From Oopsacas minuta (taxonomy: Eukaryota; Animalia; Porifera), in NCBI GenBank assembly GCA_024704765.1, contig JAKMXF010000222.1, forward strand, positions 186,001 to 250,000: 64,000 nucleotides of DNA. The letters run 5' to 3'. Below are positions 2,705 to 42,759 of the stretch, one piece after another. Position numbers and translations under genes: made by a program. A model generated the notes under the pieces. That model was not told the DNA's origin. It did no database searches and saw nothing but the letters and a program-made list of their open reading frames with translations. Position 1 is the first letter of the stretch; the number at the start of each line of letters is the position of its first letter.

Positions 2705-2709
2705 AAAAA
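2705..2709 (-). terminator. T5 run, putative Pol III terminator of unit A
   Basis: A5 on the + strand at the end of the terminal stem; same position in unit B. Confidence 0.55.
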
Positions 2710-2736
2710 GGAGGATTGCATATATCACAGATGAGT

Positions 2737-2810
2737 TGGTGTCTCTTCTAGGAATCGAACCTAGAGCTTATTTGCCCAGAAAATAAATCATACCATTAGA
2801 CTAAAAAGAC
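2737..2810 (-). tRNA. tRNA-Pro(UGG)-like cloverleaf with genome-encoded CCA, AU-rich, atypical C33
   Basis: GTCTTTT/AAGAGAC acceptor; D arm GTCT-AATGGTA-TGAT; anticodon arm TATTT-TCTGGGC-AAATA; T arm CTAGG-TTCGATT-CCTAG; 3' A-CCA. A-box TAGTCTAATGG and B-box GGTTCGATTCC. Confidence 0.75.
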
Positions 2811-2859
2811 GAAGTAGTGATATATTTAGCCTCCTTAAGTGTATACCAATTTTATTGTA

Positions 2860-2867: not shown

Positions 2868-3038
2868 CTATGCAAGATTGTATTAATTAATAGAAAGGGT
2901 TACTTTCAATCACATTATTTCCAATAGAAATTAGAATTGTTTCATTATTTGTATATGCTATCACACAAGAAATTGGCCCTCTACCAACTTTCATTTATTA
3001 AATTCATACACAGGAAGACAAACGTATCGCGAAATAAT

Positions 3039-4283
3039 ATGAAACGGAAGTTATCAACGGATGAACAAATGATTGAACCAACAGCCAAAAAAACAAAGAA
3101 AATATTTGACTTTTCACTTTACAATTTACGGCATGTAGCATTCAAAATTGCCTATCTCGGTCAAAACTATTCAGGTTTCGCTATACAACCACATGAGAAA
3201 AACACTATTGAAGAGGAGTTATTTAGAGCTTTCATTGAATGTAAGTTAATATCGAGTAGAACAACATGTAATTATTCACGTTGTGGACGTACAGACAAGG
3301 GAGTAAGCGCAGTTGGTCAAGTAATAGCATTACATGTTCGTTCTAACCTCAGGGAAGGTTTAGGTATAATTCCTCGAATTGAAAATACTACTGAAGGAGT
3401 GGAAGATAGAGTTGAATTGCCGTATGTCAGAATGTTACAAGCTAAATTACCAGATGAAATACAAATACTATCATGGGCACCTGTTCCTATTGATTTTTCA
3501 GCTCGTTTTTCATGTCTCTTCCGTAGTTACAAGTACTATTTCCCTAAAGGAAATTTTGATATCGAAAAAATGCAGGAAGCTGCCTTGAAATTCGAAGGTG
3601 AACATGATTTTAGAAATTTTTGCAAACTAGATAACGCAACACTCCGCGATTTTAACCGCCACATCCATAAAATAAGCATTCGCACTTTAGACTCAAACTC
3701 ACAGAATGTGTTTAAATTTTGCGAACTGAATATAACTGCTAAGTCATTTTTATGGCATCAAGTAAGGTATATGATGGGGGTATTAACGCTAGTCGGACAG
3801 GGCAGGGAATCCCCTGACGTCATCGATTATCTACTGGACGTGGAAGCTTGTAAAGCAAAGCCTAACTATTCGCCGGCAACACCAGATGGATTAATACTAT
3901 ACGATTCAGGATTTGAAGATATTAATTGGGTAGATAGCTCACTACATATTTCCTGTATTATAATACGGCTACAGAGGTTATGGGTAAAGAAATCCATTGA
4001 AGAATGTATGTTGAGAGGAATCATCGACTCAATTGACCCAAGCAAAATTAAAGAAGAGGAAATCAAGCATTTCAATTTATCTTTTGACCCTGTTACGAAA
4101 TTTCCTATTTCAACACTTGCAAATGAAATAAATTCAGATATATCTTCGAATAGGTCAAAGTATACGCTTTTGAAAGATAGGCCAATTCTGAAGGGAACAA
4201 GCTTTGAGGAGAGAGTGGATAGAATAAAGAAAAGAGGAAAATTGAAAAACACGATACCTCAACAAACTAGCAGTAACGATTAA
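3039..4283 (+). CDS. PUS3: tRNA pseudouridine(38/39) synthase, TruA family
   Basis: RHVAFKIAYLGQNYSGF, catalytic CGRTDKGVSA, GEHDFRNFCK, FLWHQVR. Likely start ATG 3039 (MKRK). Confidence 0.93.
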   Translation: MKRKLSTDEQMIEPTAKKTKKIFDFSLYNLRHVAFKIAYLGQNYSGFAIQPHEKNTIEEELFRAFIECKLISSRTTCNYSRCGRTDKGVSAVGQVIALHVRSNLREGLGIIPRIENTTEGVEDRVELPYVRMLQAKLPDEIQILSWAPVPIDFSARFSCLFRSYKYYFPKGNFDIEKMQEAALKFEGEHDFRNFCKLDNATLRDFNRHIHKISIRTLDSNSQNVFKFCELNITAKSFLWHQVRYMMGVLTLVGQGRESPDVIDYLLDVEACKAKPNYSPATPDGLILYDSGFEDINWVDSSLHISCIIIRLQRLWVKKSIEECMLRGIIDSIDPSKIKEEEIKHFNLSFDPVTKFPISTLANEINSDISSNRSKYTLLKDRPILKGTSFEERVDRIKKRGKLKNTIPQQTSSND

Positions 4284-4614: not shown

Positions 4615-7600
4615 TCATGAAATAGTACAACTACTTGACGAATCATATTCAGGTGTTTTTGGTGATAAACTATCATCTACTGACGTCATAGAAACAGCCT
4701 CAATACGATTTACTTTTAATTCATCAACATTTTGGTCAGATAAATAGTTTTGCATAGATTCCAGCAGTTTCTTCATACCCAATAGAAACTCGACATATCC
4801 ATTACAATTATGAAACGCCCAAATACTAATATCATGTAATCCTTCTGAAATACCTTTGACTCGATTCTGTCCCAATTGATCAGCTGATCTCATAACAGCT
4901 GATACTGTTTCCACTACGCTATGTTTGTCTAGTAGTAAAATGCCTGTCAAAATATGCCATTCATGGCAATCAGATTTCGAGAATATTTCTTTGTAGAATT
5001 TGATTTCTTTCTCGCAATGTTTTAAGTCAACGGAATTGTTCTCACCTTCCTCGCTCAGTTCCGCGAAATGATCCTCACTATCTAGATAGGTAGTGACCTC
5101 TACTTGGTCCATTTCTGATCGGAAACAAGACGCGACTTTTGGTAGAGAATACCCTGAATCTGATCTAACTTGTACGTTCTTTGTTGAAACAGATGACGTC
5201 ATTGACAACGTATCAATCTCCCTTTCATCATTGAACTCTATTTCATTAAAATAATTTTTCGGACTCTTCACATTAGTATTTGAATCTTGTCCCATTGACC
5301 TTTGACCTGGCATTGGCCATTTAAATAGTGTATGTAGCTGTAGGAGAGCATTTGAGTAACTTTCTATTTTGATATGGAAATAATCCTCGTTTTTCAACCA
5401 GTTCACCAATGAGAAATTTAAATTCGATGACATTACAGCTAATTCTCTGAGATTTAAGTTAGTTAACTGTCTACGTGCATGTCTTCCCAGTACTTTCTCT
5501 ACAATATCCTCTTCCTCCCTGATTTCTAAATTCGCCATGAATTGAGGTCTGGGAATCTTTTTATCATCAGGTGTGTTTTGTGGTTGATGTGTTTTCTTGG
5601 GTGTAACTCTTGGTGGGACGGTCTTTTTCGGGAAATCAATTTCATGATCAGTCGTCTGTAATTGCACATTACCGATTGGTATTGAAACTTTTGGAGATAT
5701 CGGTGATTGTGGGAGTTCATTTTTCGCGATTGCTTGAATGAATTGTATAAGATTAGTGCAAAGGGGCCAATTACTACTTTCAAGACAAGCATTTAGTATA
5801 CGTCTAACCAGTCTGTAAGCGACAGCTGGTTGTTCTATAGTCTCTACAATTAGTAGGTAGTTAGCAGCAATTTCTAAGTTGCCTTTCTCCATAGCTAACT
5901 CGAAAAGTTCTTTCGGCTTTCCAGCTGCGCCGAATAAATATGTCCACACAGCAATTTCCGTTTTACGCGCACACTCACCAACAATTTTTATAAAATTAGG
6001 GAATGGACGTATCAGCTCGATAACATTAGGCAAGAGTGCGTTCGCCGTTGGTGCGCCTTGAGCCGCCTCCTCTTCCAATACGCTATGTATCAAATGTTCT
6101 AAAATATAATCGAAATGTGGTAAGTCCGCACAGGAATACGTTATCCGCATAGCGTGGCTATTTAGATTCCTCTTCAATAGTTGTTTTAAAATCAACGATA
6201 CTGTCAACTGTATATTTCTCCGTGGTAGCGAATAAGCTACAGATCGTTTTATCTTATCATAATGCAGCTGGTCGCATTCAATTCCAGCGATAGTTCCATC
6301 TTCAAAGAGTACAGATAATGGTTGTATACGCGTGTATATAGTTAGCATGATCCATTTGGAAAGATATGATGGATTACGTGGATCTTCCTGTGGGTATAAC
6401 GGGAGCCATATTTTGAGTCCTGCTTGTCCACATGCTAACCACAGGGCTTGTGATAAATACGGTCGACTTTGTGTACCTAGTCCAGGAGGGAGATACGGGT
6501 AGCTAAACACTGTTTCTACGCCGGAAGCTATGCAAACTGGACTCAAAGATTTGACTAAGTTTTTCTGTGAATGTAAATCATAATGTGATACTATCTGTAA
6601 CATCATTAGATAACCTTCTACGTTTATAAGTATAGAAGCTAAGCCAAATTCATTGACAGGTGACAGTACTTCAGTTTGTACAGTTGACATTGAAGCGGAT
6701 ATTATATTATACGGCGACCAACCATATTCTTCATATGAAGTATTCAGTATTAAATCAGTAGTTAGTGTGTTCTTGTTACCAAGCTGAGTTTTGGAAAGAT
6801 GGTAGATTAATAGTTTATGATTAGCAGTCAGTACTAGTAGATTATCAAGATATACATCAAGTATACATACACGTTGCGGAAAGTTGATTTTCAATAGAGT
6901 TTGGCTGTCTTCTAATTTTTCATGTAACGAATTGAAAGTAATATTATTTTTCTGTGAACTGTTTGTTGTAGAGCTGACCACCAATATCTCATTCCACCAA
7001 GCTATTCCTCCGTTACACCGGAAACTCATCTCTTGAGTTTCATTTACATATAGTTTCCATTTATTTTTGCTGTAATTACACATGCATAGACCGTTTGAAC
7101 CAGCTACAGCAAGATATTTGTAACGCTCATTCAATGCAACCATTTTAATAGGCCAATTCTTCATTATGTAATTACGCTCAACTTGGATAATATTGCAAAA
7201 ATGCATATTTTGTTGATGCTCGATTTCGGTCTTACAGAATGTTGATTTAGGATAAATGTACACTGTAGTTGGACTATGTAGTATCACATTTTCTTGATTG
7301 GAGAGGATAGGTAAGAAGGATAAGGCGCTTTTAAGAAAGTTGAAAACAAGAAATTCATTTAATCTAAATGAGCCATGAGAATTTACCTGACGGAGTAACC
7401 ATAATGAGTATCCATCTTTCGTCCAGTTTATAGGTCCAAGGTGCGGATTTGCATTCATATCAAGCTCATCATAAGTTGAAATCAGTGATCCGAAAACTGA
7501 AAATATACTGAGAAAACCGTTCATCCAAAGCACAGCTAATACTTTCTCATCGCCAGTAGACCACTGCAGAGAGAGAACCTGATTATTTGTTGATGTATTC

Positions 7601-8499
7601 TCATCTGGATTATCTAGAATATGAGAGTTTTGCCAATTCCCAGAATCAACATCTTGCTTCCATATCTGAACCTGACCAGATCTACACCCAATAGCTGCTA
7701 TCTTAAATTTGTAATTAATAGAAATGTCAACTGCATCTATGATACCTTTGAAATAATACAGTTTAGTTGAGTCGTTAAAAAACGCGTTTATATCTGAACT
7801 GGCTAAGAAATAAACTTCACCATCATTCACGATAACAAACATACCCAATGGAGAAGTTGATGGAAATATTGATTTGATTATGACATTTTTGGCAGGCCCT
7901 TCTTCCGGTATAGTCGCCGTACTGTCGCGCTTATGGTGAACAAGTCTTGTTATATTGACTGACATTTGTGACGAAGACTGTCCATCCCAGTCTAACTGAT
8001 GCAAATATCCAGTTTGTGTACTGAGAATAATATAATCTCCAAATGTTGCTATCGAGCTAATGATTGTATTGAAAGATATACGAACGAGCTCTTCAAAGTG
8101 CGTTAGAGAGAAATCACAAGAATTCGACTTTATCGTGCTCATGTCGATTAAAAAATCGATTCCTTCTTTTGAGTATGTTTGTGAGTTTTCAGAATAATTA
8201 ATTTCCTTCATGTGTACTGCGAATATTATTATATGGCCGATTTTGGTTAGAATAACGAAACGTTCGCCGTCACGATGCCAACAACCGTACATATTCAAAC
8301 CAAGTTCATCAAATGTTGAATCAGGACGTTTGTAGACTGCGAAAAGTGTGGAATTTCGTGTGTCCCAGAACTGTAATGTTCTAGAGGTGATTAGGATTAA
8401 GATGGGGAGGTAAGGGTGTCTACAAGGCTTGATATAAGAAGAGTCTTCATCGCTTGTGTTGAGTTTGATTACTTTCGGCCAACCAGTAGGGAAATACAT
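4615..8499 (-). CDS. RIC1: RIC1 (RAB6A GEF complex partner), intronless
   Basis: N-terminus MYFPTGWPK, WD40-like region, CARKTEIAVWTYLFGAAGKPKELF RIC1 domain. Confidence 0.93.
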   Translation of the reverse strand: MYFPTGWPKVIKLNTSDEDSSYIKPCRHPYLPILILITSRTLQFWDTRNSTLFAVYKRPDSTFDELGLNMYGCWHRDGERFVILTKIGHIIIFAVHMKEINYSENSQTYSKEGIDFLIDMSTIKSNSCDFSLTHFEELVRISFNTIISSIATFGDYIILSTQTGYLHQLDWDGQSSSQMSVNITRLVHHKRDSTATIPEEGPAKNVIIKSIFPSTSPLGMFVIVNDGEVYFLASSDINAFFNDSTKLYYFKGIIDAVDISINYKFKIAAIGCRSGQVQIWKQDVDSGNWQNSHILDNPDENTSTNNQVLSLQWSTGDEKVLAVLWMNGFLSIFSVFGSLISTYDELDMNANPHLGPINWTKDGYSLWLLRQVNSHGSFRLNEFLVFNFLKSALSFLPILSNQENVILHSPTTVYIYPKSTFCKTEIEHQQNMHFCNIIQVERNYIMKNWPIKMVALNERYKYLAVAGSNGLCMCNYSKNKWKLYVNETQEMSFRCNGGIAWWNEILVVSSTTNSSQKNNITFNSLHEKLEDSQTLLKINFPQRVCILDVYLDNLLVLTANHKLLIYHLSKTQLGNKNTLTTDLILNTSYEEYGWSPYNIISASMSTVQTEVLSPVNEFGLASILINVEGYLMMLQIVSHYDLHSQKNLVKSLSPVCIASGVETVFSYPYLPPGLGTQSRPYLSQALWLACGQAGLKIWLPLYPQEDPRNPSYLSKWIMLTIYTRIQPLSVLFEDGTIAGIECDQLHYDKIKRSVAYSLPRRNIQLTVSLILKQLLKRNLNSHAMRITYSCADLPHFDYILEHLIHSVLEEEAAQGAPTANALLPNVIELIRPFPNFIKIVGECARKTEIAVWTYLFGAAGKPKELFELAMEKGNLEIAANYLLIVETIEQPAVAYRLVRRILNACLESSNWPLCTNLIQFIQAIAKNELPQSPISPKVSIPIGNVQLQTTDHEIDFPKKTVPPRVTPKKTHQPQNTPDDKKIPRPQFMANLEIREEEDIVEKVLGRHARRQLTNLNLRELAVMSSNLNFSLVNWLKNEDYFHIKIESYSNALLQLHTLFKWPMPGQRSMGQDSNTNVKSPKNYFNEIEFNDEREIDTLSMTSSVSTKNVQVRSDSGYSLPKVASCFRSEMDQVEVTTYLDSEDHFAELSEEGENNSVDLKHCEKEIKFYKEIFSKSDCHEWHILTGILLLDKHSVVETVSAVMRSADQLGQNRVKGISEGLHDISIWAFHNCNGYVEFLLGMKKLLESMQNYLSDQNVDELKVNRIEAVSMTSVDDSLSPKTPEYDSSSSCTIS

Positions 8500-8599
8500 A
8501 GAACTAAAAACAATGAAGGAATTTACGTTAAGTGTACGGAGGCATAGATTTAATCTAATCAGGTTAATTACTCGCTCATTTCATATGGCTACAAAATCC

Positions 8600-8715
8600 C
8601 ATAATCACCAACCCTCATAGATTCTTGGATATTACGTTTTACAAGATGTCAAGGTTAATTTTATGATACTACTTGCTAATATGCGAGCTCCGCTCTATAA
8701 GGGTTGGTAAGTATG
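8600..8715. mobile_element. MITE family C (CATACTT(G/A)CCAAC-type TIR)
   Basis: CATAATCACCAACCCTCATAG ... CTATAAGGGTTGGTAAGTATG inverted ends. The same right end GTTGGCAAGTATG ends at 26267 and 48278. Confidence 0.6.
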
Positions 8716-8814
8716 GAATCCCCAGCTGTTATTAAACAGTAATTAAACGCATTCAAAAATTTATAATTACGTCGTGACGTTGAAATTAAAGAACTAGACA
8801 CCATAAAATAATAT

Positions 8815-30268: not shown

Positions 30269-31540
30269 ATGTCAGATAATATTTCTATTCATATAGGGCA
30301 AGCTGGATGCAATATAGGAAACACTCTATGGGAATTGTATTGTATGGAAAATGGTTTAGGAAGAGATGGTAATCTGGTTGATGCAAATTCAGACCATTTT
30401 TATCACGATACAACGTTCTTTACACAAAATTCAAAGAAACATTATACTCCTAGATCAATATTTGTTGACTTTGACAGCGTAAATATTGATGCAATCAAAA
30501 CGTGTTATCCAAAACTGTACAATCCTGATAGTCTAATATCTAAGCAAAATGGACTCAATACATTCGCTACGGGATATCACACAGAAGGTAAATTGATTCT
30601 AGAAAGTGTAATGGAGGAAATACGTAGAATTTGTGAAGTAACTGATAGAAGTAAAATATTCTGGATATTTCATTCTCTAAGTGGTGGTACAGGTTCTGGA
30701 TTAGGGAGTTTAATATTAGATGAAATTAACTGTGAATATAAAGGGATTAAATTCCAAGTTGCGACACTCCCTGATACAGATAAATTATCAAGTTTAGAAT
30801 GCTACAACTCAACTCTCTCATTCAGTTCGTGTATTGAATTAGCAGATATGAGTTTATTCTTCTCGAATAGAAAAATAGCACAAATTCTACAACAAGATTA
30901 CCATACAGTTCCCTTAACAAATACAAACAGACATATTTGCATAGCTCTATCCTCTCTAACTTCAAGTTGTAGACAATCTTTTGGTAAAGATATTAGCGAT
31001 CAAATTGACATCAAGGTTTACCCCAGAATGCATTACCCATTAATTTCATACTACCCAACTTCAAAAATACACCAGATATACAAGGAAAGTCCCACTGTAA
31101 AAGATTTGACTATTCGTTGTTTTGATAGTAGAAATGTTGTGCTAGAGGCCGACCCTTCATTTGGCTTATATATCAATGTAAATCTGTTTTATAGAGGTGA
31201 TGTACAACCACGTCACGTCATTGAATCGTTTGTACATTTAGGAGATAATGTTGAGTTGTTATATTGGACGCCAGCTGGGCTTAAGATATCCTATTCAGAT
31301 CACTCGCGGTTTATTTCACCTGAGAGAGATTTGCTACGTGTTAATCGTTCTGTATGTATGGTGTCACAAAACACAATATTTAAAGAGTATCTCAAAGGAT
31401 TGTCAGATAAATTCAGTGCTACTTTTCGCAAGAAGGAATTCCTAGATTTGTACATAAAGAATGGAGTTGAGGAATTAGAATTTCAGAATTCAAAAGAGAA
31501 TATTGACTCTCTGATACAGGAATATGAAGAGTTAATTTAA
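30269..31540 (+). CDS. Highly divergent alpha-tubulin-like protein
   Basis: ISIHIGQAG, PRSIFVDFD, HSLSGGTGSG, YPRMHYPL, RSVCMVSQNT, EELEFQ..EYEEL are collinear with alpha-tubulin. Confidence 0.85.
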   Translation: MSDNISIHIGQAGCNIGNTLWELYCMENGLGRDGNLVDANSDHFYHDTTFFTQNSKKHYTPRSIFVDFDSVNIDAIKTCYPKLYNPDSLISKQNGLNTFATGYHTEGKLILESVMEEIRRICEVTDRSKIFWIFHSLSGGTGSGLGSLILDEINCEYKGIKFQVATLPDTDKLSSLECYNSTLSFSSCIELADMSLFFSNRKIAQILQQDYHTVPLTNTNRHICIALSSLTSSCRQSFGKDISDQIDIKVYPRMHYPLISYYPTSKIHQIYKESPTVKDLTIRCFDSRNVVLEADPSFGLYINVNLFYRGDVQPRHVIESFVHLGDNVELLYWTPAGLKISYSDHSRFISPERDLLRVNRSVCMVSQNTIFKEYLKGLSDKFSATFRKKEFLDLYIKNGVEELEFQNSKENIDSLIQEYEELI

Positions 31541-35921: not shown

Positions 35922-36429
35922 CGTAATTACACTAATACCATAAATACAAATATTTTCAATTGAAATAATAAACGTATAGCTGTGCGTGATGTCATGGACA
36001 TGTAATATATGTAAAGCTCGATATTAGAACAGGCGCGGCAGGTCCGGCAAGCGCCGTACCTCAATATCCGCTCAAGCTGGCAAATTTCCTGTTTTTGAAT
36101 TACTTTTAGTACTAGTGAATTAATTAAATAGAGCAGTTGGGTATTATAACACTATTTACGTGTATAAACCAATTCCCCGCGACACTTAAGAGTACGTATA
36201 GAGATTTGCGTATTCGTAAGGCAATAAAGCAGTAATGTAAAATGTGTTCATATTGATCGTATTTAATTGGTACGTATTACGCTCGAACTGGGCATTTTCG
36301 GGTAAAAAGTGGAAAGTTGGAAAGTTAAAATTATACAGCCATAACTCCTTATACAAACTCAGTAGAACAGAATCAATGAATGCAAATTAGACAATTCCTT
36401 GTTACTCAATTTCGCCAATAATGTGTGAG

Positions 36430-36434
36430 AAAAA
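36430..36434 (-). terminator. T5 run, putative Pol III terminator of unit B
   Basis: A5 on the + strand at the end of the terminal stem. Confidence 0.55.
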
Positions 36435-36462
36435 GGAGGATTGCGTCTATCGCAAGAGGAGT

Positions 36463-36533
36463 TGCTTACCTGGGGATCGAACCCAGATTCTCACATGTGA
36501 AAGGTGTGCGTTATAACCATTAAACTAATAAGC
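36463..36533 (-). tRNA. tRNA-like cloverleaf with Glu(UUC) anticodon, 6-bp acceptor stem, no encoded CCA
   Basis: GCTTAT/GTAAGC acceptor; D arm GTTT-AATGGTTA-TAAC; anticodon arm CACAC-CTTTCAC-ATGTG (C31-A39 mismatch); T arm CTGGG-TTCGATC-CCCAG. A and B boxes intact. Confidence 0.68.
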
Positions 36534-36580
36534 GAAGTAGCGATAGACAATGCCTCCTAAAAATATTGGAATTGGATCTC

Positions 36581-36588
36581 CTTATATA
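36581..36588 (-). promoter_or_regulatory. TATA box (TATATAAG) upstream of unit B
   Basis: 22 nt upstream of the AGGAGG 5' end, matching unit A. Confidence 0.55.
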
Positions 36589-37746
36589 TAGCAATGGTTC
36601 ACTTTTATTTCTCTTTTGGTTGGATAATAAAACTCAAAGATAGTTGTATCCGGAGCTCATGTTACAGTGGGCACTACGGGGCGCTGATTCTAAATATGTA
36701 CTTAAGACACGTATACCCCCGAACGATATATCTGGTATATGTCATAATACGTAGACTTGAACTTATAGAAAAGTTCAAGCCTAAGTGTGTTATTATTTGT
36801 ATATGTAGTAATGAAAAAGCAAATTTATTTTCTGTGTGCTGCCTGATTGCAACAATGCAATGATTAGGAATTATGAGGTCAAGTCTATAGCTCTATACTG
36901 AGAATAGCAATTTTTGTATAAACTATAAAAAGCTTGGAAAATGAGGCTCTATATTTTACGGAACGACGGAAAGCACAACTTTCGCCTAGGCAGCATTACT
37001 TTTCAAACGAATTATTAGCTAAAATATTACAATAACAGGGCTCTCAACCTGAAAACTTTCGATATTCTGATATTCGTGAATATTCTTTGTTGTTCACCTC
37101 ATTTATCTACATAAAATATTTTGCGCTTTCGAGCTTTCAAGGGCGAATTATAAAATATTGGGATTGATGGCACGATTTTTATCGAATTAATTGACAATCA
37201 AGCGTTACTTGCTGTAATTATGTATTTTACTATATGATTAGAAGTGAGGGTGGAAATCTGCCTTGGATTATTGTCTAACTTGGTCGGCTTGATGCCGCAA
37301 TTCAGAGACCCCTTGTTCAAATGGAAGTTTGACCAATTTGCTCTATTTAACCCCTACTCAAACGCTGCGTGTGTGCTCAGCAATTTTACATTCCTCGCAT
37401 AGGTATGCTCACTTAACCCAATGAGCAGCCGTACTCTCTTCATTCTGCATTCGCACTCGACTTTTCAATACAGAATTATCCATTATAATATGTAATATTG
37501 GTGTTCAAGGAGCAGCCCTTCTTGAATGTTAGCACTTTCATGTGAAGAGTACCAGAAACTAAGCAAATTTTGGTGGCACACAAATGTACGGCGGCACACC
37601 GGTTGATGACATCGCATTATCATGTATGACTATTTCATATACACATAGTTTTCAAAATATTCGGCAAAAATTGAGACATGTTTCTGCTAAACTGTATAAT
37701 TACTAAATATATTATGAGTATTTAGATTTACTTCAAGACGAGAAAG

Positions 37747-40700
37747 ATGGCTCAAAATCAAGCCTTACAAAACTCCGTCAAAGTTGGAGTAAATCCGAAA
37801 GAATTTATTGAATCTCTCCAACAAGATTTGAGAAATCTGAGCGTAGAAGCTAAAAAGAAATACCCAAACCTACGCGAACCATTAGAACGGGGTATAATGC
37901 AGTTACATGAGATATCAATACCTACCGAATCATTTGATGCTCTCAAAGATCATGTAGCCGAAATTGTCATTGCATCGATTATGGGTATATTTGATACAAA
38001 GGTCACTCGTTTGGTTTATCTAGGTCTCCAGTGTATTCAGAGGTTACTCACTGCCAATTCGGTCAATAAACAATCTCTCCAGCGTTTGACAGCTCTTCTG
38101 GCAGAACTAGCTATAACTGGACCGGAAGAAGTCAAAGTTATACAAACTCTACTCCAAATGGTTTCCACAGATTTGCGGTCAATACAAGGTTCGCTCCTTT
38201 CCAAATCACTACGTATAACAATCCTACTTCTTTCCAACAAGGATCCTATAGTATCGAACACAGCATCAACTGCTCTACGGCAAATCGTATTGACTGTATT
38301 TGAATGGGCTTCTACGGAGGATATGAAGGATATTTCACCCAAGGTAAGTTCTGATATCAAACCACGTACTACACCAACTCCTGGTATAAATGTGCTACCA
38401 CAGTTAACTCCACACGCACAAGACGCTCACTCCCTGTTCAGGGATTTATGTCAACTTACTTCAGGTGACCCTCCATTCTGGTTAGACCGTGATTTGAGTT
38501 TGAATAAAGAATTAGGACTAGAATTGATAGAAAGTGTTCTGCTTAGTCATAAGAGCCTATTCTTTCTGCATTCCGAGTTTAGCTGGTTGCTAACAGAGTG
38601 TGCATCTCCATTATTAATAAAATTATTCTCTCTAGTCGTAACTACACCCAAAATACAATCTTCTGGGTTATTAGCAATGACGTCAGTACTTCAGTCTGGA
38701 ACTGGACACGACATGAAAGCACTCAGTTTCTCCATTTACGTTCGGTTATTCCGCCTACTCCATATTCTAGTGAATACGTATCATCCTCTGCTGATGATGG
38801 AATGTGAAATTTTCTTTTCACTATTACAAAGGTTTATCGAGCAAAATTCACAATTATGGCAGACATCACTAGCATTGGAAGTAGTGAGAAGGTTTTGTAT
38901 TAAATCGGAATTGTTAGTTGCCTTGTGTAAGTATTACGATATGCAGCCGAAAAGCGCACAGGTTTTCGGCAACTTAATCGCCAGCATGTCACACTCTTTT
39001 GAGACAATGGTTCGGGAAGTTGTACAACAAGGAGGTAGTGGTCAGTTAGAATCTATAGGACAGATCAATAAGATTCCCTTACTTGGTTCAAATAAACAAT
39101 CACTACTGGAAATGATGGATAAACCAGATCCACCACATTTAAGTGAATCATATGGTTGTGCTGTTTGCTTGTCAGCGTTTGACCAGCTGATACGTAGCTT
39201 CGGGGGTTTATACGGTGAGGAATTAAACGCGAAAAAATCCGCGAATAGCTTAGAATCTCACGAGCATGTTACAAATAACGAACACACTAGAAAAGACGCG
39301 AATATAATCTCAGTGCTTACAGCAATGATAACTGCTACTTGGTTTCCAATACTGAACTCATTTAACTTAGTTATAGATCAGTTTATCGAAGAAGGCACTA
39401 TTGAATCTGTTCTTCAGTGTAAACAAACGTTTATATACCTAACAGCTTCATTACCGTTAGAAAAACCAAGGAATTATTTCGTGTTGTCTCACTGTAACTG
39501 GTCTCTACCACCTGGAGTACCTAAACTACCTTTAACAACCGAAATTACGAACTTAGCGACAAAACTGCGCGAATTCAGACATAACACAGATGAGAACCTA
39601 TTTATACCCCAGGTATCTGCCCAAAGGAAGCATTTACAGTGTCTACGTAGTCTCTTAACGTTAGCACATGTCCATGGTTCTGTATTGGGATTAGCATGGT
39701 ATCCAATTCTGTGTACCCTACAGGAAGTTTATTATTATTATAATTTAGAAGCTTACGCCTCAGCATTTTCTAGAAAAGAGCAATTACAACCTCAGATTGT
39801 ACCGCACTTCACTACTACAACTTTACGGGAGGATTTTATAGTACTACAACAGTTGATGTTGAAATTGTTTGACAGTTCGCAGTTCTTGAATGATCAAGCT
39901 TTGACCTGTTTACTTCAAGCCTTGTGTAGATTATGCACTGAATCCTTGGTCCATATCCATGTAATACCAAGCAGTCAGAATGAAAACCCGCGTTTGTTTT
40001 GTATAACCAAAATACAACAGGTCTGTTCTGCGAATTTATTCCGCTCGAATTTATTTTGGGAGAATTTAAGCGGGCATCTTCTGACAGCTTGTCAATCACC
40101 TAACCAGCTGATAGCCTCAGCAGCTGGTGAATCATTCATCGAATTAATCAGAAACGCTATAGAATTCAGTCACCATCCTGCTTTAGACGAACAAAAAGAA
40201 CTACAACGAACATTCATGCAATCATTTCTAGAACTATCCCTGGTCCAAAATGACAGACATTTCAGTCTACAGTTATCATCACTGAACGTAATCCTACAGC
40301 AGAGCATAACATACGTGAATTTCTCATGGGATATAATACTATCTATTTTAACCTATGCTGCTAGCACGAGCTCGACTGCAATTGTTAAATTAGGTTACCG
40401 TAACTTGCAGTATATTATAGCGGATTGTTTACCAGTTATTACGGTGGAATATCATACAGTAGTGATACTAACTACTGCTATGTATGGACGGCAAGAAGTA
40501 GAGATAAACACTTCATTCTCAGCTGTTGGTCAGCTGTGGAATCTTGCTGACTACTTCTTTCAGGATTGGAAACGTATACAAAGCGCGGATCATACAAATT
40601 CTTTTGAAAAAAATGCGTTTCTTAATAACTCCACCGACACGATATCAACCCCTATAATGAGATTCCTACAGAACAATAAACTTGTACAAATAGGCACAAA

Positions 40701-42759
40701 TTCTGCATTATCATGGGGAGATAACCTATGGATGACATTATTCCTATCTCTAGGACAATTATGTGTAGATGACAGAGGCACTGTACGTAGAAGCGCGGCT
40801 CAGTCATTATTCGCGACCTTAGAAACACACGGGGAGCTACTGAGTAAACCTGAATCTTGGAGTCATGTATTCTGGGAGTTGATCTTCCCTCTAGTTGATG
40901 AAATGAAGCTGGCTATAGAGACTGCTAGAACAACACCAGAATACGAATCTACTGTTATAATACATCATCATAGTAGGGATACAGCTCACAAGCAATGGGC
41001 AGAGACTCTTGCACTAGTTGGTATGCAGCTGGGTCGGTTAATCAAGGCCAGATGGGGAACTTTAGTATATCTGACAGATTTCGCGAAAATATGGACGGCT
41101 TATCTTGGCTTTGTTGAGTTCTGTTGTTTGAAATTCACACCCGAGGTAGCATTTCAAACGTTACAAAGTTTTCGTGATATTTTATTGAACGGTGTTAACT
41201 ATGATGAATCTAGCCAATCTATACACCTCTCCTCACAACATTTAGATGTCCGTTTGGATGAGGCTTATACGCAAGCCTGGTCAACTTGGATTCAACTCGC
41301 GAAAACTAAAATACCATCTATGCTTAAGGATATTGAAATTGCGACTGATAGAGCTATGTTACCGGAAATGTCCCATTTCCATGCTGTAGTTATAAATCTC
41401 GTCAAGTTAGGCCCTGCATTATTTATCCATGTAAAATCATCTTTACAAGTCTCACATATTTCTCAGCTATTCCAGCTGATTAGAACCTGTGTCCAGTGTC
41501 CAGTGGAGCGTGACGTATCACCTTTCCTTGTCCCTTCACCCACAGAAGATATCATTGCTCATTTACATGAATGCATTCTACATACAATCCATATTATCTT
41601 AATCGAAAAACTAACTACACAATCTATTCTGTGTTTTGAAGCTACAAGCCTTATGAGTCGTAAAACTGATTGGGAGGATAGTTTGTTGAATATTACTATC
41701 TCGAATGAATTTAAGCTATATATTCCTCTAATTTTGAAAGAATTATTCTTCTATTGCACTCTCATACATCAACCATTAGCTATACAAATTCCATCAGATC
41801 TTAAGTCCTATTTCATGGATGTAAATTATTACCCATTTTTCAAGGTTTGCTTGAGATTTCTGAAGGTATTACTGCCTCTATCTCTTGCTACTTCCATGGC
41901 TTATTCCGTATTTATTCCAGAATGTATGCCGAGCTTGGAAAAATTAATTCCCTTGAGATATCAATTATACACAAATTCAATGGAGAACTGGGAGAATATG
42001 ACCGATATGCTATTACTATTCTTCAAATGTTGTGTCCAGTATTCATTGGAACTCAATGAAACGCTCAAATCAACAAAAACGAGCATAAATCTTTCGCTCC
42101 TAGAATTATTCTCGCTTATAGAAAGTACAATATTTGAAATTACTCCAATCGACTCAACAAAGCAATATGTGTTAGACAGCCAGCGAAAAAGTATTCAGAT
42201 TATAGATCTACTGTTACGTAACTTTGAAAATAAACTACAAGAATTGCCATTTGACGTTTCTAATGCTTACCTCAACCTGTTGATAAAAGGTGCATTTCTT
42301 TTCCAAGAACTCGAATTCGAAATTGAACGAGAATTGTCCTATTCATGTTTAGATGCGTTTCTAGCTAGCACGCTCAAAGCCCAACCTGGCACATTTTCTA
42401 ATCGAACGTTTAAAAACTTAATTGACATTTCGATTGGAAAACTTTCATTATTTCCTAAGGAAAATATTGAATCCGAAGAGCCTTTGGTAAGTGAACAGGA
42501 AATGGTTTTAATCCTACAATTAATATGTCGTACTATTCAATCTGTCAACGAGCTACTTTCTCGTAACAAATCGAAACAGGATCAGAATTCCAAAGCCATC
42601 GTAGCGTTGTTAAGCAGAATATACATACCTTTAACAGACTGTTGTACTGTATCTTCGCTAAAAGTTAGAGAAACTCTCAAAATTACTCTCCAACAACTCG
42701 CCTCATGGATTATATTTTCAGGTACAAATTCTTATCTCTCTATTTCGTCCCAAGATTAG
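37747..42759 (+). CDS. MON2: MON2 (Arf-GEF-like Golgi/endosome scaffold), intronless
   Basis: LQQDLRNLSVEAKKKYP, DCB/HUS domains, LGLELIESVL, LCVDDRGTVRRSAAQSLF, HHSRDTAHKQWAET. Confidence 0.95.
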   Translation: MAQNQALQNSVKVGVNPKEFIESLQQDLRNLSVEAKKKYPNLREPLERGIMQLHEISIPTESFDALKDHVAEIVIASIMGIFDTKVTRLVYLGLQCIQRLLTANSVNKQSLQRLTALLAELAITGPEEVKVIQTLLQMVSTDLRSIQGSLLSKSLRITILLLSNKDPIVSNTASTALRQIVLTVFEWASTEDMKDISPKVSSDIKPRTTPTPGINVLPQLTPHAQDAHSLFRDLCQLTSGDPPFWLDRDLSLNKELGLELIESVLLSHKSLFFLHSEFSWLLTECASPLLIKLFSLVVTTPKIQSSGLLAMTSVLQSGTGHDMKALSFSIYVRLFRLLHILVNTYHPLLMMECEIFFSLLQRFIEQNSQLWQTSLALEVVRRFCIKSELLVALCKYYDMQPKSAQVFGNLIASMSHSFETMVREVVQQGGSGQLESIGQINKIPLLGSNKQSLLEMMDKPDPPHLSESYGCAVCLSAFDQLIRSFGGLYGEELNAKKSANSLESHEHVTNNEHTRKDANIISVLTAMITATWFPILNSFNLVIDQFIEEGTIESVLQCKQTFIYLTASLPLEKPRNYFVLSHCNWSLPPGVPKLPLTTEITNLATKLREFRHNTDENLFIPQVSAQRKHLQCLRSLLTLAHVHGSVLGLAWYPILCTLQEVYYYYNLEAYASAFSRKEQLQPQIVPHFTTTTLREDFIVLQQLMLKLFDSSQFLNDQALTCLLQALCRLCTESLVHIHVIPSSQNENPRLFCITKIQQVCSANLFRSNLFWENLSGHLLTACQSPNQLIASAAGESFIELIRNAIEFSHHPALDEQKELQRTFMQSFLELSLVQNDRHFSLQLSSLNVILQQSITYVNFSWDIILSILTYAASTSSTAIVKLGYRNLQYIIADCLPVITVEYHTVVILTTAMYGRQEVEINTSFSAVGQLWNLADYFFQDWKRIQSADHTNSFEKNAFLNNSTDTISTPIMRFLQNNKLVQIGTNSALSWGDNLWMTLFLSLGQLCVDDRGTVRRSAAQSLFATLETHGELLSKPESWSHVFWELIFPLVDEMKLAIETARTTPEYESTVIIHHHSRDTAHKQWAETLALVGMQLGRLIKARWGTLVYLTDFAKIWTAYLGFVEFCCLKFTPEVAFQTLQSFRDILLNGVNYDESSQSIHLSSQHLDVRLDEAYTQAWSTWIQLAKTKIPSMLKDIEIATDRAMLPEMSHFHAVVINLVKLGPALFIHVKSSLQVSHISQLFQLIRTCVQCPVERDVSPFLVPSPTEDIIAHLHECILHTIHIILIEKLTTQSILCFEATSLMSRKTDWEDSLLNITISNEFKLYIPLILKELFFYCTLIHQPLAIQIPSDLKSYFMDVNYYPFFKVCLRFLKVLLPLSLATSMAYSVFIPECMPSLEKLIPLRYQLYTNSMENWENMTDMLLLFFKCCVQYSLELNETLKSTKTSINLSLLELFSLIESTIFEITPIDSTKQYVLDSQRKSIQIIDLLLRNFENKLQELPFDVSNAYLNLLIKGAFLFQELEFEIERELSYSCLDAFLASTLKAQPGTFSNRTFKNLIDISIGKLSLFPKENIESEEPLVSEQEMVLILQLICRTIQSVNELLSRNKSKQDQNSKAIVALLSRIYIPLTDCCTVSSLKVRETLKITLQQLASWIIFSGTNSYLSISSQD

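Follow-up and report, generated by a model that had tools for sequence, protein, structure and literature searches.

A tRNA-shaped unit in Oopsacas minuta, a glass sponge, is probably the gene of a panhandle-framed, non-decoding small RNA

The unit B locus

We analyzed a tRNA-shaped unit, referred to here as unit B, in a 64-kb stretch of nuclear DNA from the glass sponge Oopsacas minuta (contig JAKMXF010000222.1, assembly GCA_024704765.1; hereafter, the window); JAKMXF is the whole-genome project of this sponge (PMC10280926). ARAGORN calls unit B a tRNA-Glu(ttc) gene at 36461-36534 on the minus strand, and in a search of the whole window it scores 49.6 bits against the Rfam tRNA model (E = 1.3e-7). 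A gene for a UBN-like protein, identical at every residue to one on this contig, neighbours unit B; a Mon2 gene lies downstream (37747-42759), and a second unit with a like frame, unit A, is located next to PUS3. Five Mon2 orthologues (76-86% identity) were found on long contigs of ENA assemblies (L002-L006), which we treated as relatives of O. minuta on the basis of protein identity and synteny. In L003, L004 and L005 the UBN-Mon2 arrangement is kept, the Mon2 protein is 82-84% identical to that of the window, and the spacer between the two genes contains 2-4 units. The UBN-Mon2 spacers hold nine intact units, which we call B-type, and two decayed ones. A covariance model, R1, was built from ten units (alignment A2: the nine B-type units plus unit A). 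The features of the two window units are as follows.

36607-36630, minus strand: block resembling a proximal sequence element (PSE) (...ATCCAACCA...), about 50-70 nt before the predicted start; putative promoter function
36581-36590, minus strand: TATA box TATATATAAG, 22 nt upstream of AGGAGG
36430-36558, minus strand: predicted unit B transcript, panhandle plus cloverleaf, 129 nt from AGGAGG to the T5 run; R1 144 bits, full length
36553-36558, minus strand: 5' strand of outer helix H1, AGGAGG; partner 36434-36439, the six pairs being 98% paired over 10 units
36540-36548, minus strand: 5' strand of inner helix H2, GUCUAUCGC; partner 36445-36453, invariant in 9 B-type units
36534-36539, minus strand: single-stranded leader UACUUC (CUACUUC with the preceding C), adjoining the acceptor; invariant
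36463-36533, minus strand: tRNA-shaped core with 6-bp acceptor, D arm, anticodon arm, 5-nt variable loop, T arm and discriminator A
36497-36503, minus strand: anticodon-like loop CUUUCAC (the tip of the RNA), triplet UUC at 36499-36501, as read from the sequence
36454-36462, minus strand: variable, pyrimidine-rich trailer ACUCCUCUU, facing the leader; 52% mean pairwise identity
36445-36453, minus strand: 3' strand of H2, GCGAUAGAC; from the minimum free energy (MFE) fold and family pairing
36430-36444, minus strand: conserved 3' end GCAAUCCUCCUUUUU, comprising the 3' side of an internal loop, the 3' strand of H1 and the T5 terminator
2705-2835, minus strand: unit A, second family member, with a like frame and a different body; loop UCUGGGC, 7-bp acceptor, encoded ACCA; R1 115 bits

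In the sequence, the loop CUUUCAC of unit B occupies 36503-36497 and its triplet UUC 36501-36499. The acceptor stem consists of six pairs (GCUUAU/GUAAGC, one U·G pair included), and the discriminator A is followed by ACU, with no encoded CCA. Non-standard pairs are found in the Rfam alignment at 1-72 (C·A), 13-22 (U·U) and 31-39 (C·A). The acceptor thus falls short of seven pairs, and this state, with C·A at 1-72, is kept in 9/9 B-type units. The U13·U22 mismatch of the D stem is unique to unit B of O. minuta, its relatives having a perfect GUUU/AAAC stem. The nucleotides of tertiary interactions (U8, A14, G18 G19, U54 U55 C56 and A58) are all present. Sequence and Rfam alignment bear out a preliminary description of the window, which had reported a cloverleaf with this loop that lacks CCA, pairs only six acceptor positions and has a mismatch at C31·A39. 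Side-by-side comparison confirmed its statement that both acceptor strands are shorter than those of unit A, and the paired flanks, TATA box and T5 run around the cloverleaf agree with its description of the unit as framed.

The frame is made of two helices: in H1, AGGAGG (36558-36553) pairs with CCUCCU (36439-36434), and in H2, GUCUAUCGC (36548-36540) pairs with GCGAUAGAC (36453-36445). The MFE fold of a 135-nt stretch contains both of them, and with them the T arm and the 6-bp acceptor. A 15-mer, GCAATCCTCCTTTTT, has exact matches at units A and B only within the 64-kb window. The 3' strand of H1 is 100% conserved among the nine B-type units; in H2, three pairs are altered on both sides in unit A relative to the B-type units. 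The leader is 100% identical in the nine B-type units and unit A, and the trailer is the least conserved transcribed segment, being closer within species than between orthologues. Three further ideas were considered and rejected. A Shine-Dalgarno meaning of AGGAGG is unsupported, the locus being eukaryotic and nuclear, and neither a bulge-helix-bulge splicing motif in the unit nor pairing of the tip with the trailer or leader found support in the sequence.

Runs of T act as terminators for RNA polymerase III (Pol III); the T5 run of unit B lies at 36434-36430. A TATA box (TATATAAG) is kept at equal distance in the 10 units of alignment A2. In an alignment of 110 nt of upstream DNA from 11 units, we found a conserved block of the type ATCAAACCACATTCAAAAT and then TGCTGTATATAAG about 30 nt upstream, while CTACTTCG precedes every ARAGORN-called unit of L003-L005. 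With the exception of the promoter, DNA outside the units cannot be aligned between species. With their T-run, their TATA box at -30 and their PSE-like block, the units display a layout of the Pol III type, and it is from this layout that we infer transcription by Pol III and a role for the PSE-like block. Mixed-type Pol III genes, such as those for vault RNA, combine external PSE and TATA elements with internal A and B boxes and a T-run (PMC7058938).

Conservation of the family and of its anticodon-like tip

When alignment A2 was scored against the specified structure, 96% of 349 cells contained standard pairs, and 10/35 pairs were changed on both sides; none of 500 shuffles reached this, and pairing in slid controls was 36-62%. 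The helices of the core are likewise backed by compensatory changes across the family. Regional conservation, expressed as mean pairwise identity among the nine B-type units, is distributed unevenly: 96-100% for H1, H2 and the leader CUACUUC, 96% for the 5' strand of the acceptor, 89% for the D and T arms, 58% for the anticodon loop and 52% for the trailer. The frame is therefore more conserved than the tRNA arms, which is the opposite of the pattern expected for a real pre-tRNA. For a decoding tRNA the flanks would be discarded and hence free of constraint; here the frame helices and leader exceed the tRNA arms in identity.

By Mon2 identity, O. minuta groups with the L002 species, L003, L004 and L005 form a second group (89-90% mutual identity) and L006 is the outgroup. 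All nine B-type units have in common the frame, the 6-bp acceptor, the D arm, the T arm and an upstream TATA box, and they diverge chiefly in the anticodon arm and trailer. According to ARAGORN, the loops read Ser(gct) and Asp(gtc) in L003, Ser(gct), His(gtg) and Glu(ttc) in L004, and Cys(gca), Arg(cct) and Glu(ttc) in L005. R1 recovers every unit at 115-147 bits, plus the two decayed copies. One of these (L003:8946-9066) has lost 7 nt of the T loop as well as the TATA box; the other (L004:8907-9026) is a weak remnant without the outer helix and anticodon loop. These copies show local birth and death of units. A search with filters off revealed no further units or relics in the UBN-Mon2 spacer of O. 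minuta, and neither ARAGORN nor R1 detected units at the Mon2 loci of L002 and L006, which have other upstream neighbours.

A search of JGI metagenomes with the pattern CTACTTCG, a gap and TWGTYTAATGG returned 35 loci, none of them a true family member by R1. One locus, L020:871-998, is a tRNA-Cys gene with its own flanking inverted repeat of ~9 bp (CCAGAG..TGA / TCA..CTCTGG) on a gene-dense, prokaryote-like JGI contig; it is unrelated to the sponge family, though similar in layout. Two other observations were made along the way at the sponge loci. The tail-to-tail inverted units of L004 (8139-8268, plus strand; 8621-8750, minus strand) are separated by a long palindromic spacer (8305-8576) with weak matches to plant microRNA models on both strands, probably an inverted duplication only. 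In O. minuta, a gene call at L001:7382-8433 fuses a glycosyltransferase (Caps_synth/Gly_transf_sug) with tubulin into a protein of 672 aa. This is probably an artefact of annotation, given that the two are separate in the relatives (L004:590-3114, L005:273-2948) and that the window has a 423-aa tubulin open reading frame at 30269-31540.

The behaviour of the anticodon-like tip was analyzed in the UBN-proximal and Mon2-proximal lineages of L003-L005. Over the 17 columns of the anticodon arm, units of the same lineage from different species differ at 4/102 positions, and units of different lineages from the same species at 24/51. The corresponding values are 33/59 and 9/29 for the trailer and 8% and 9% for everything else. 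Within L003, the Ser and Asp units differ at 4/107 positions outside the tip and at 9/17 inside it (Fisher p ~1e-6); for the Ser and His units of L004 the values are 4/108 and 6/17 (p ~4e-4). Presumably, body and flank are homogenised within species by gene conversion while each paralogue retains its own tip. Neutral drift of the anticodon loop was rejected, as tips are conserved within paralogue lineages. The loop of unit B is that of the Mon2-proximal lineage (CUUUCAC in L004 and L005, CUGUCAC in L003); its stem matches the UBN-proximal lineage, and its position and orientation match the middle lineage, in which tips vary (His, Arg). By these matches, unit B looks like a mosaic. The UBN-proximal tip has C33 or a pyrimidine at 37, depending on the register, and stem mismatches, either C31·A39 or U30·C40, are conserved in the family. 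We conclude that the tip is probably under selection and yet no reader of codons. Tips kept by paralogues on homogenised bodies constitute a clear signature, open to testing, that an anticodon-like loop is selected for something other than translation. Near-identity extends through promoter spacer, frame and body in two pairs of units, L003:6036-6163/9498-9625 and L004:8139-8268/8621-8750.

The cloverleaf of unit A scores 49.2 bits against the Rfam tRNA model and has C at position 33. Orthologues of its neighbour, PUS3, were found in four assemblies, including one from the outgroup species, and 4/4 have a unit A-type gene in equal place and orientation, two of them with a second copy. H2 covaries among these unit A orthologues (for example, ATATATCAC/GTGATATAT versus TCACATCGT/ACGATGTGT). 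Loops of this lineage have 6-8 nt and read UGG, UGG, GUG, 'UAGG' and GCA, and the outgroup copy has a 6-bp acceptor, as does unit B. Because unit A-type genes adjoin PUS3 in the outgroup too, the family is, by this synteny, older than the divergence of all six sampled species.

A unit A-type gene lies directly upstream of PUS3 in 5/5 species examined (window 2705-2835 and 2937-4283; L007, L009, L010 and L011, ~5450-7350). PUS3 is the enzyme that pseudouridylates tRNA positions 38 and 39; the adjacency may be a coincidence or a conserved linkage. The ACCA of unit A is encoded at 2737-2740 of the window, and several B-type units (L003, L005) keep ACC. CCA is normally not encoded in nuclear tRNA genes, which hints at a family ancestor copied either from a mature tRNA or from a gene of organelle or bacterial type.

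To place the family, units were compared with Rfam models. At permissive thresholds, Vault (RF00006) was the only non-tRNA family to align over the whole unit. The alignments always span model positions 1-99 and end at the ends of the units, which are 126-131 nt long; that of unit B pairs both frame helices and matches CUACUUCG and the 3' end. Unit B scores 22.2 bits (36429-36559), six relatives score 17.1-25.7 bits, and the outgroup unit A-type gene L011:5729-5859 scores 31.7 bits (E = 0.004) in a blind 53-kb search. At a control locus that holds ~20 ordinary tRNAs, no match to Vault was obtained with E up to 10. The Y_RNA and YrlA models had no match to the sponge units at E up to 10 in four scans.

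Readings of the unit

The preliminary description had offered two readings of unit B, an anticodon-switched tRNA-Val or a structural mimic outside decoding, and the comparative data on body, frame and tip pattern favour the mimic. A genuine decoding tRNA-Glu(UUC), whether a remoulded tRNA-Val or an AU-rich nuclear tRNA imported into mitochondria with the frame as processing or import signal, is very unlikely. It would account for the canonical loop, for the complete set of tertiary-interaction nucleotides and for the retention of CUUUCAC in the Mon2-proximal unit of two relatives. However, one acceptor stem and discriminator are combined with Ser, His, Cys, Arg, Asp and Glu triplets, which clashes with the identity rules of tRNAs, by which Ser calls for a long variable arm, His for G-1 and Cys for U73. 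Orthologues also switch meaning, from UUC to GUC and from GCU to GCA, and the lineage of unit A shows UGG, GUG and GCA. There are loops of 6 or 8 nt and loops without U33 or without a purine at 37; the acceptor is only 6 bp long, the C31·A39 or U30·C40 mismatches are conserved, and the frame is the best-conserved part. An origin from tRNA-Val fares no better, since a single family body carries Ser, Asp, His, Glu, Cys and Arg loops in the relatives. The Val-like D arm of the preliminary description, GGTTATAACG, is a derived state: the counterpart in position and orientation, L004:8621-8750 (93.5% identical outside the anticodon arm), has the D arm GGTTCAAAC and the remaining B-type units GG(T/A)CAAAC, so that the string GGTTATAAC is private to O. 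minuta and no relic of tRNA-Val, and it is this change that creates the U13·U22 mismatch. The T arm thought to be Val-like, CTGGG...CCCAG, also occurs in L004 units with GCT and GTG loops, and alternates with CTAGG...CCTAG via compensatory change. When both cores were compared by nearest-neighbour BLAST with 50,697 phage records, neither a Val nor a Glu signal emerged; the matches, the best being to Lys and Leu, covered T-arm segments of Lys, Leu and Tyr tRNAs only and are uninformative as to isotype. As for import, the suggestion that glass-sponge mitochondrial DNA (mtDNA) often lacks trnE is right for Aphrocallistes vastus, in which trnD, trnE and trnT are absent from the mtDNA and have to be imported (PMC2267718), and the Mon2-proximal lineage has exactly UUC or GUC. 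For O. minuta itself, 22 tRNAs are listed in the mtDNA report, and trnW is the only one that it names as missing (PMC4520895). The family includes Pro UGG loops as well, although A. vastus mtDNA encodes trnP (PMC2267718).

We consider it most improbable of all that unit B has no function as an RNA and is a decaying tRNA pseudogene, a tRNA-derived short interspersed element (SINE) or some other selfish repeat. Members of this multi-copy family do turn over locally, as the decayed L003:8946-9066 and L004:8907-9026 attest, and the number and orientation of units vary between species; those decayed copies, though, show what lost constraint looks like, whereas intact units keep the frame helices and four cloverleaf helices by compensatory change. 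Each intact unit also has its own upstream promoter, which retroposed copies would not have, and syntenic positions are kept in species with 76-90% Mon2 identity whose intergenic DNA is unalignable. No relative has a UAC anticodon or a 7-bp acceptor at the locus, and this excludes the idea that unit B is simply a decayed copy of such a gene. More plausible, if still rather unlikely, is that the panhandle RNA is a precursor from which RNase P and RNase Z free the core, as with mascRNA and the YrlA of M. smegmatis, so that the functional products would be a free 71-nt mimic, a leader-trailer duplex or both. In all units the acceptor is bordered by single-stranded nucleotides, the 7-bp acceptor of unit A is followed by ACCA and the discriminator of several relatives by ACC, and tRNA-like modules of other non-coding RNAs are processed in this way (PMC4201824). 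Conservation of the frame above that of the core would be unexpected for discarded flanks, however; the B-type acceptor has only 6 bp, and, as is the case for vault and Y RNAs, a fully paired end passes straight into the T5 run.

The explanation that we prefer, and judge probable, is that unit B is no working tRNA-Glu and represents a gene of a conserved family of glass-sponge small non-coding RNAs in which a panhandle carries a non-decoding tRNA mimic. The family is apparently undescribed and is kept by several glass sponges. A small nuclear RNA-type promoter (PSE-like block plus TATA box), together with A and B boxes placed internally in the D and T arms, would direct Pol III to transcribe from about AGGAGG to the T5 run, yielding an RNA of ~129 nt. 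Its ends would zip into the 6-bp AGGAGG/CCUCCU helix, a small internal loop and the 9-bp helix, and a pyrimidine-rich internal loop would lead into a complete cloverleaf competent to adopt the L shape. We suppose that the RNA remains intact as a panhandle. The frame, apparently its most strongly selected part, would most likely be a protein-binding module, with the U-tail bound by La, and the cloverleaf would provide a surface like that of a tRNA as well as the internal promoter. The anticodon-like loop may then be seen as a non-decoding, paralogue-specific tip that is kept distinct between neighbouring copies, and the 6-bp acceptor, absent CCA and mismatched anticodon stem as family features rather than decay. 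Structure, conservation, covariation, promoter and terminator motifs and the tip pattern are direct observations; Pol III transcription, persistence of the intact RNA and its protein partners are predicted from them.

Several points weigh against this explanation or its link to vault RNA. The loop of unit B is canonical (C32, U33, A37) and conserved in two relatives, and 6-10 nt by the acceptor are unpaired, so that RNase P and RNase Z might gain access. None of the Vault scores reaches 34 bits, the gathering score of Rfam, the window's unit A has no Vault match at E up to 1, and part of the Vault score comes from the B box and T-run, possible in any Pol III gene.

Whatever their function, the units are called Glu, Pro, Ser, His, Cys and Arg tRNAs by tRNA finders and could distort or inflate a glass-sponge tRNA census; nor should they be taken as evidence of anticodon shifts or of tRNA import into mitochondria. 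They would represent a conserved, structured small RNA family in early-branching animals and a candidate for the unreported sponge vault RNA.

Comparison with known RNAs

The closest analogue in design appears to be YrlA (RF02553), a bacterial tRNA mimic bound by Ro60, in which an end-stem is likewise joined to a domain that resembles a tRNA, has D and T arms and conserves the tertiary nucleotides (PMC4201824). The acceptor-like stem of YrlA is shorter than 7 bp in most species and escapes RNase P (PMC4201824). Unlike the acceptor of the sponge units, it is a closed stem-loop, and the ends of the RNA exit elsewhere. YrlA is bacterial, and metazoan Y RNAs are without the tRNA-like module (PMC4201824).

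One tRNA body with different anticodons is also encountered in alloacceptor remoulding, for example in sponge mitochondria (PMC4783518). Remoulded tRNAs, though, are free, decoding molecules with a 7-bp acceptor in which the switch is then fixed. The units are framed and have a 6-bp acceptor and a body homogenised within species, and non-canonical tips persist in them. A non-decoding cloverleaf within a longer transcript, recognised by tRNA enzymes, is known from mascRNA (MALAT1) and from the tRNA-miRNA genes of gammaherpesviruses. In contrast to the predicted panhandle RNA, these are released through cleavage by RNase P and RNase Z and are not known to possess a conserved panhandle of leader and trailer.

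The leading affiliation is with vault RNA, and we put true homology at somewhat less than an even chance. Vault RNAs are of similar size (~100-140 nt) and share the two-part terminal stem of paired ends, the oligo-U tail and a variable central domain. Their genes, of the Pol III type, combine A and B boxes inside the gene with TATA and PSE-type elements outside it (PMC7058938), an arrangement to which the putative promoter of the sponge units corresponds in sequence. The units also resemble the Vault consensus in the CUACUUCG motif (GUUACUUCG in the outgroup unit) and the GC..UCC..UCCUUUU 3' end, and the invariant leader aligns with the GUUACUUCG motif of that consensus. As of 2009, vault RNAs were largely unknown beyond deuterostomes (PMC2655684); one is known in Trypanosoma brucei (PMC12547018). 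In the literature we found no description of a sponge vault RNA or of a sponge Pol III non-coding RNA of the unit type.

If the homology is real, the frame would correspond to the terminal stems of vault RNA, with the cloverleaf filling the variable central domain. A bolder and distinctly less likely proposal is that glass sponges keep an ancestral vault RNA with a full cloverleaf centre, whose tips would serve as interchangeable specificity modules, for instance by acting as decoys for, or adaptors to, proteins that recognise anticodon loops. In that event vault RNAs would descend from tRNA genes, and the units could represent a tRNA-vault RNA intermediate. What sets the units apart is their central domain, a complete cloverleaf that has A and B boxes of its own, which no described vault RNA is known to have.

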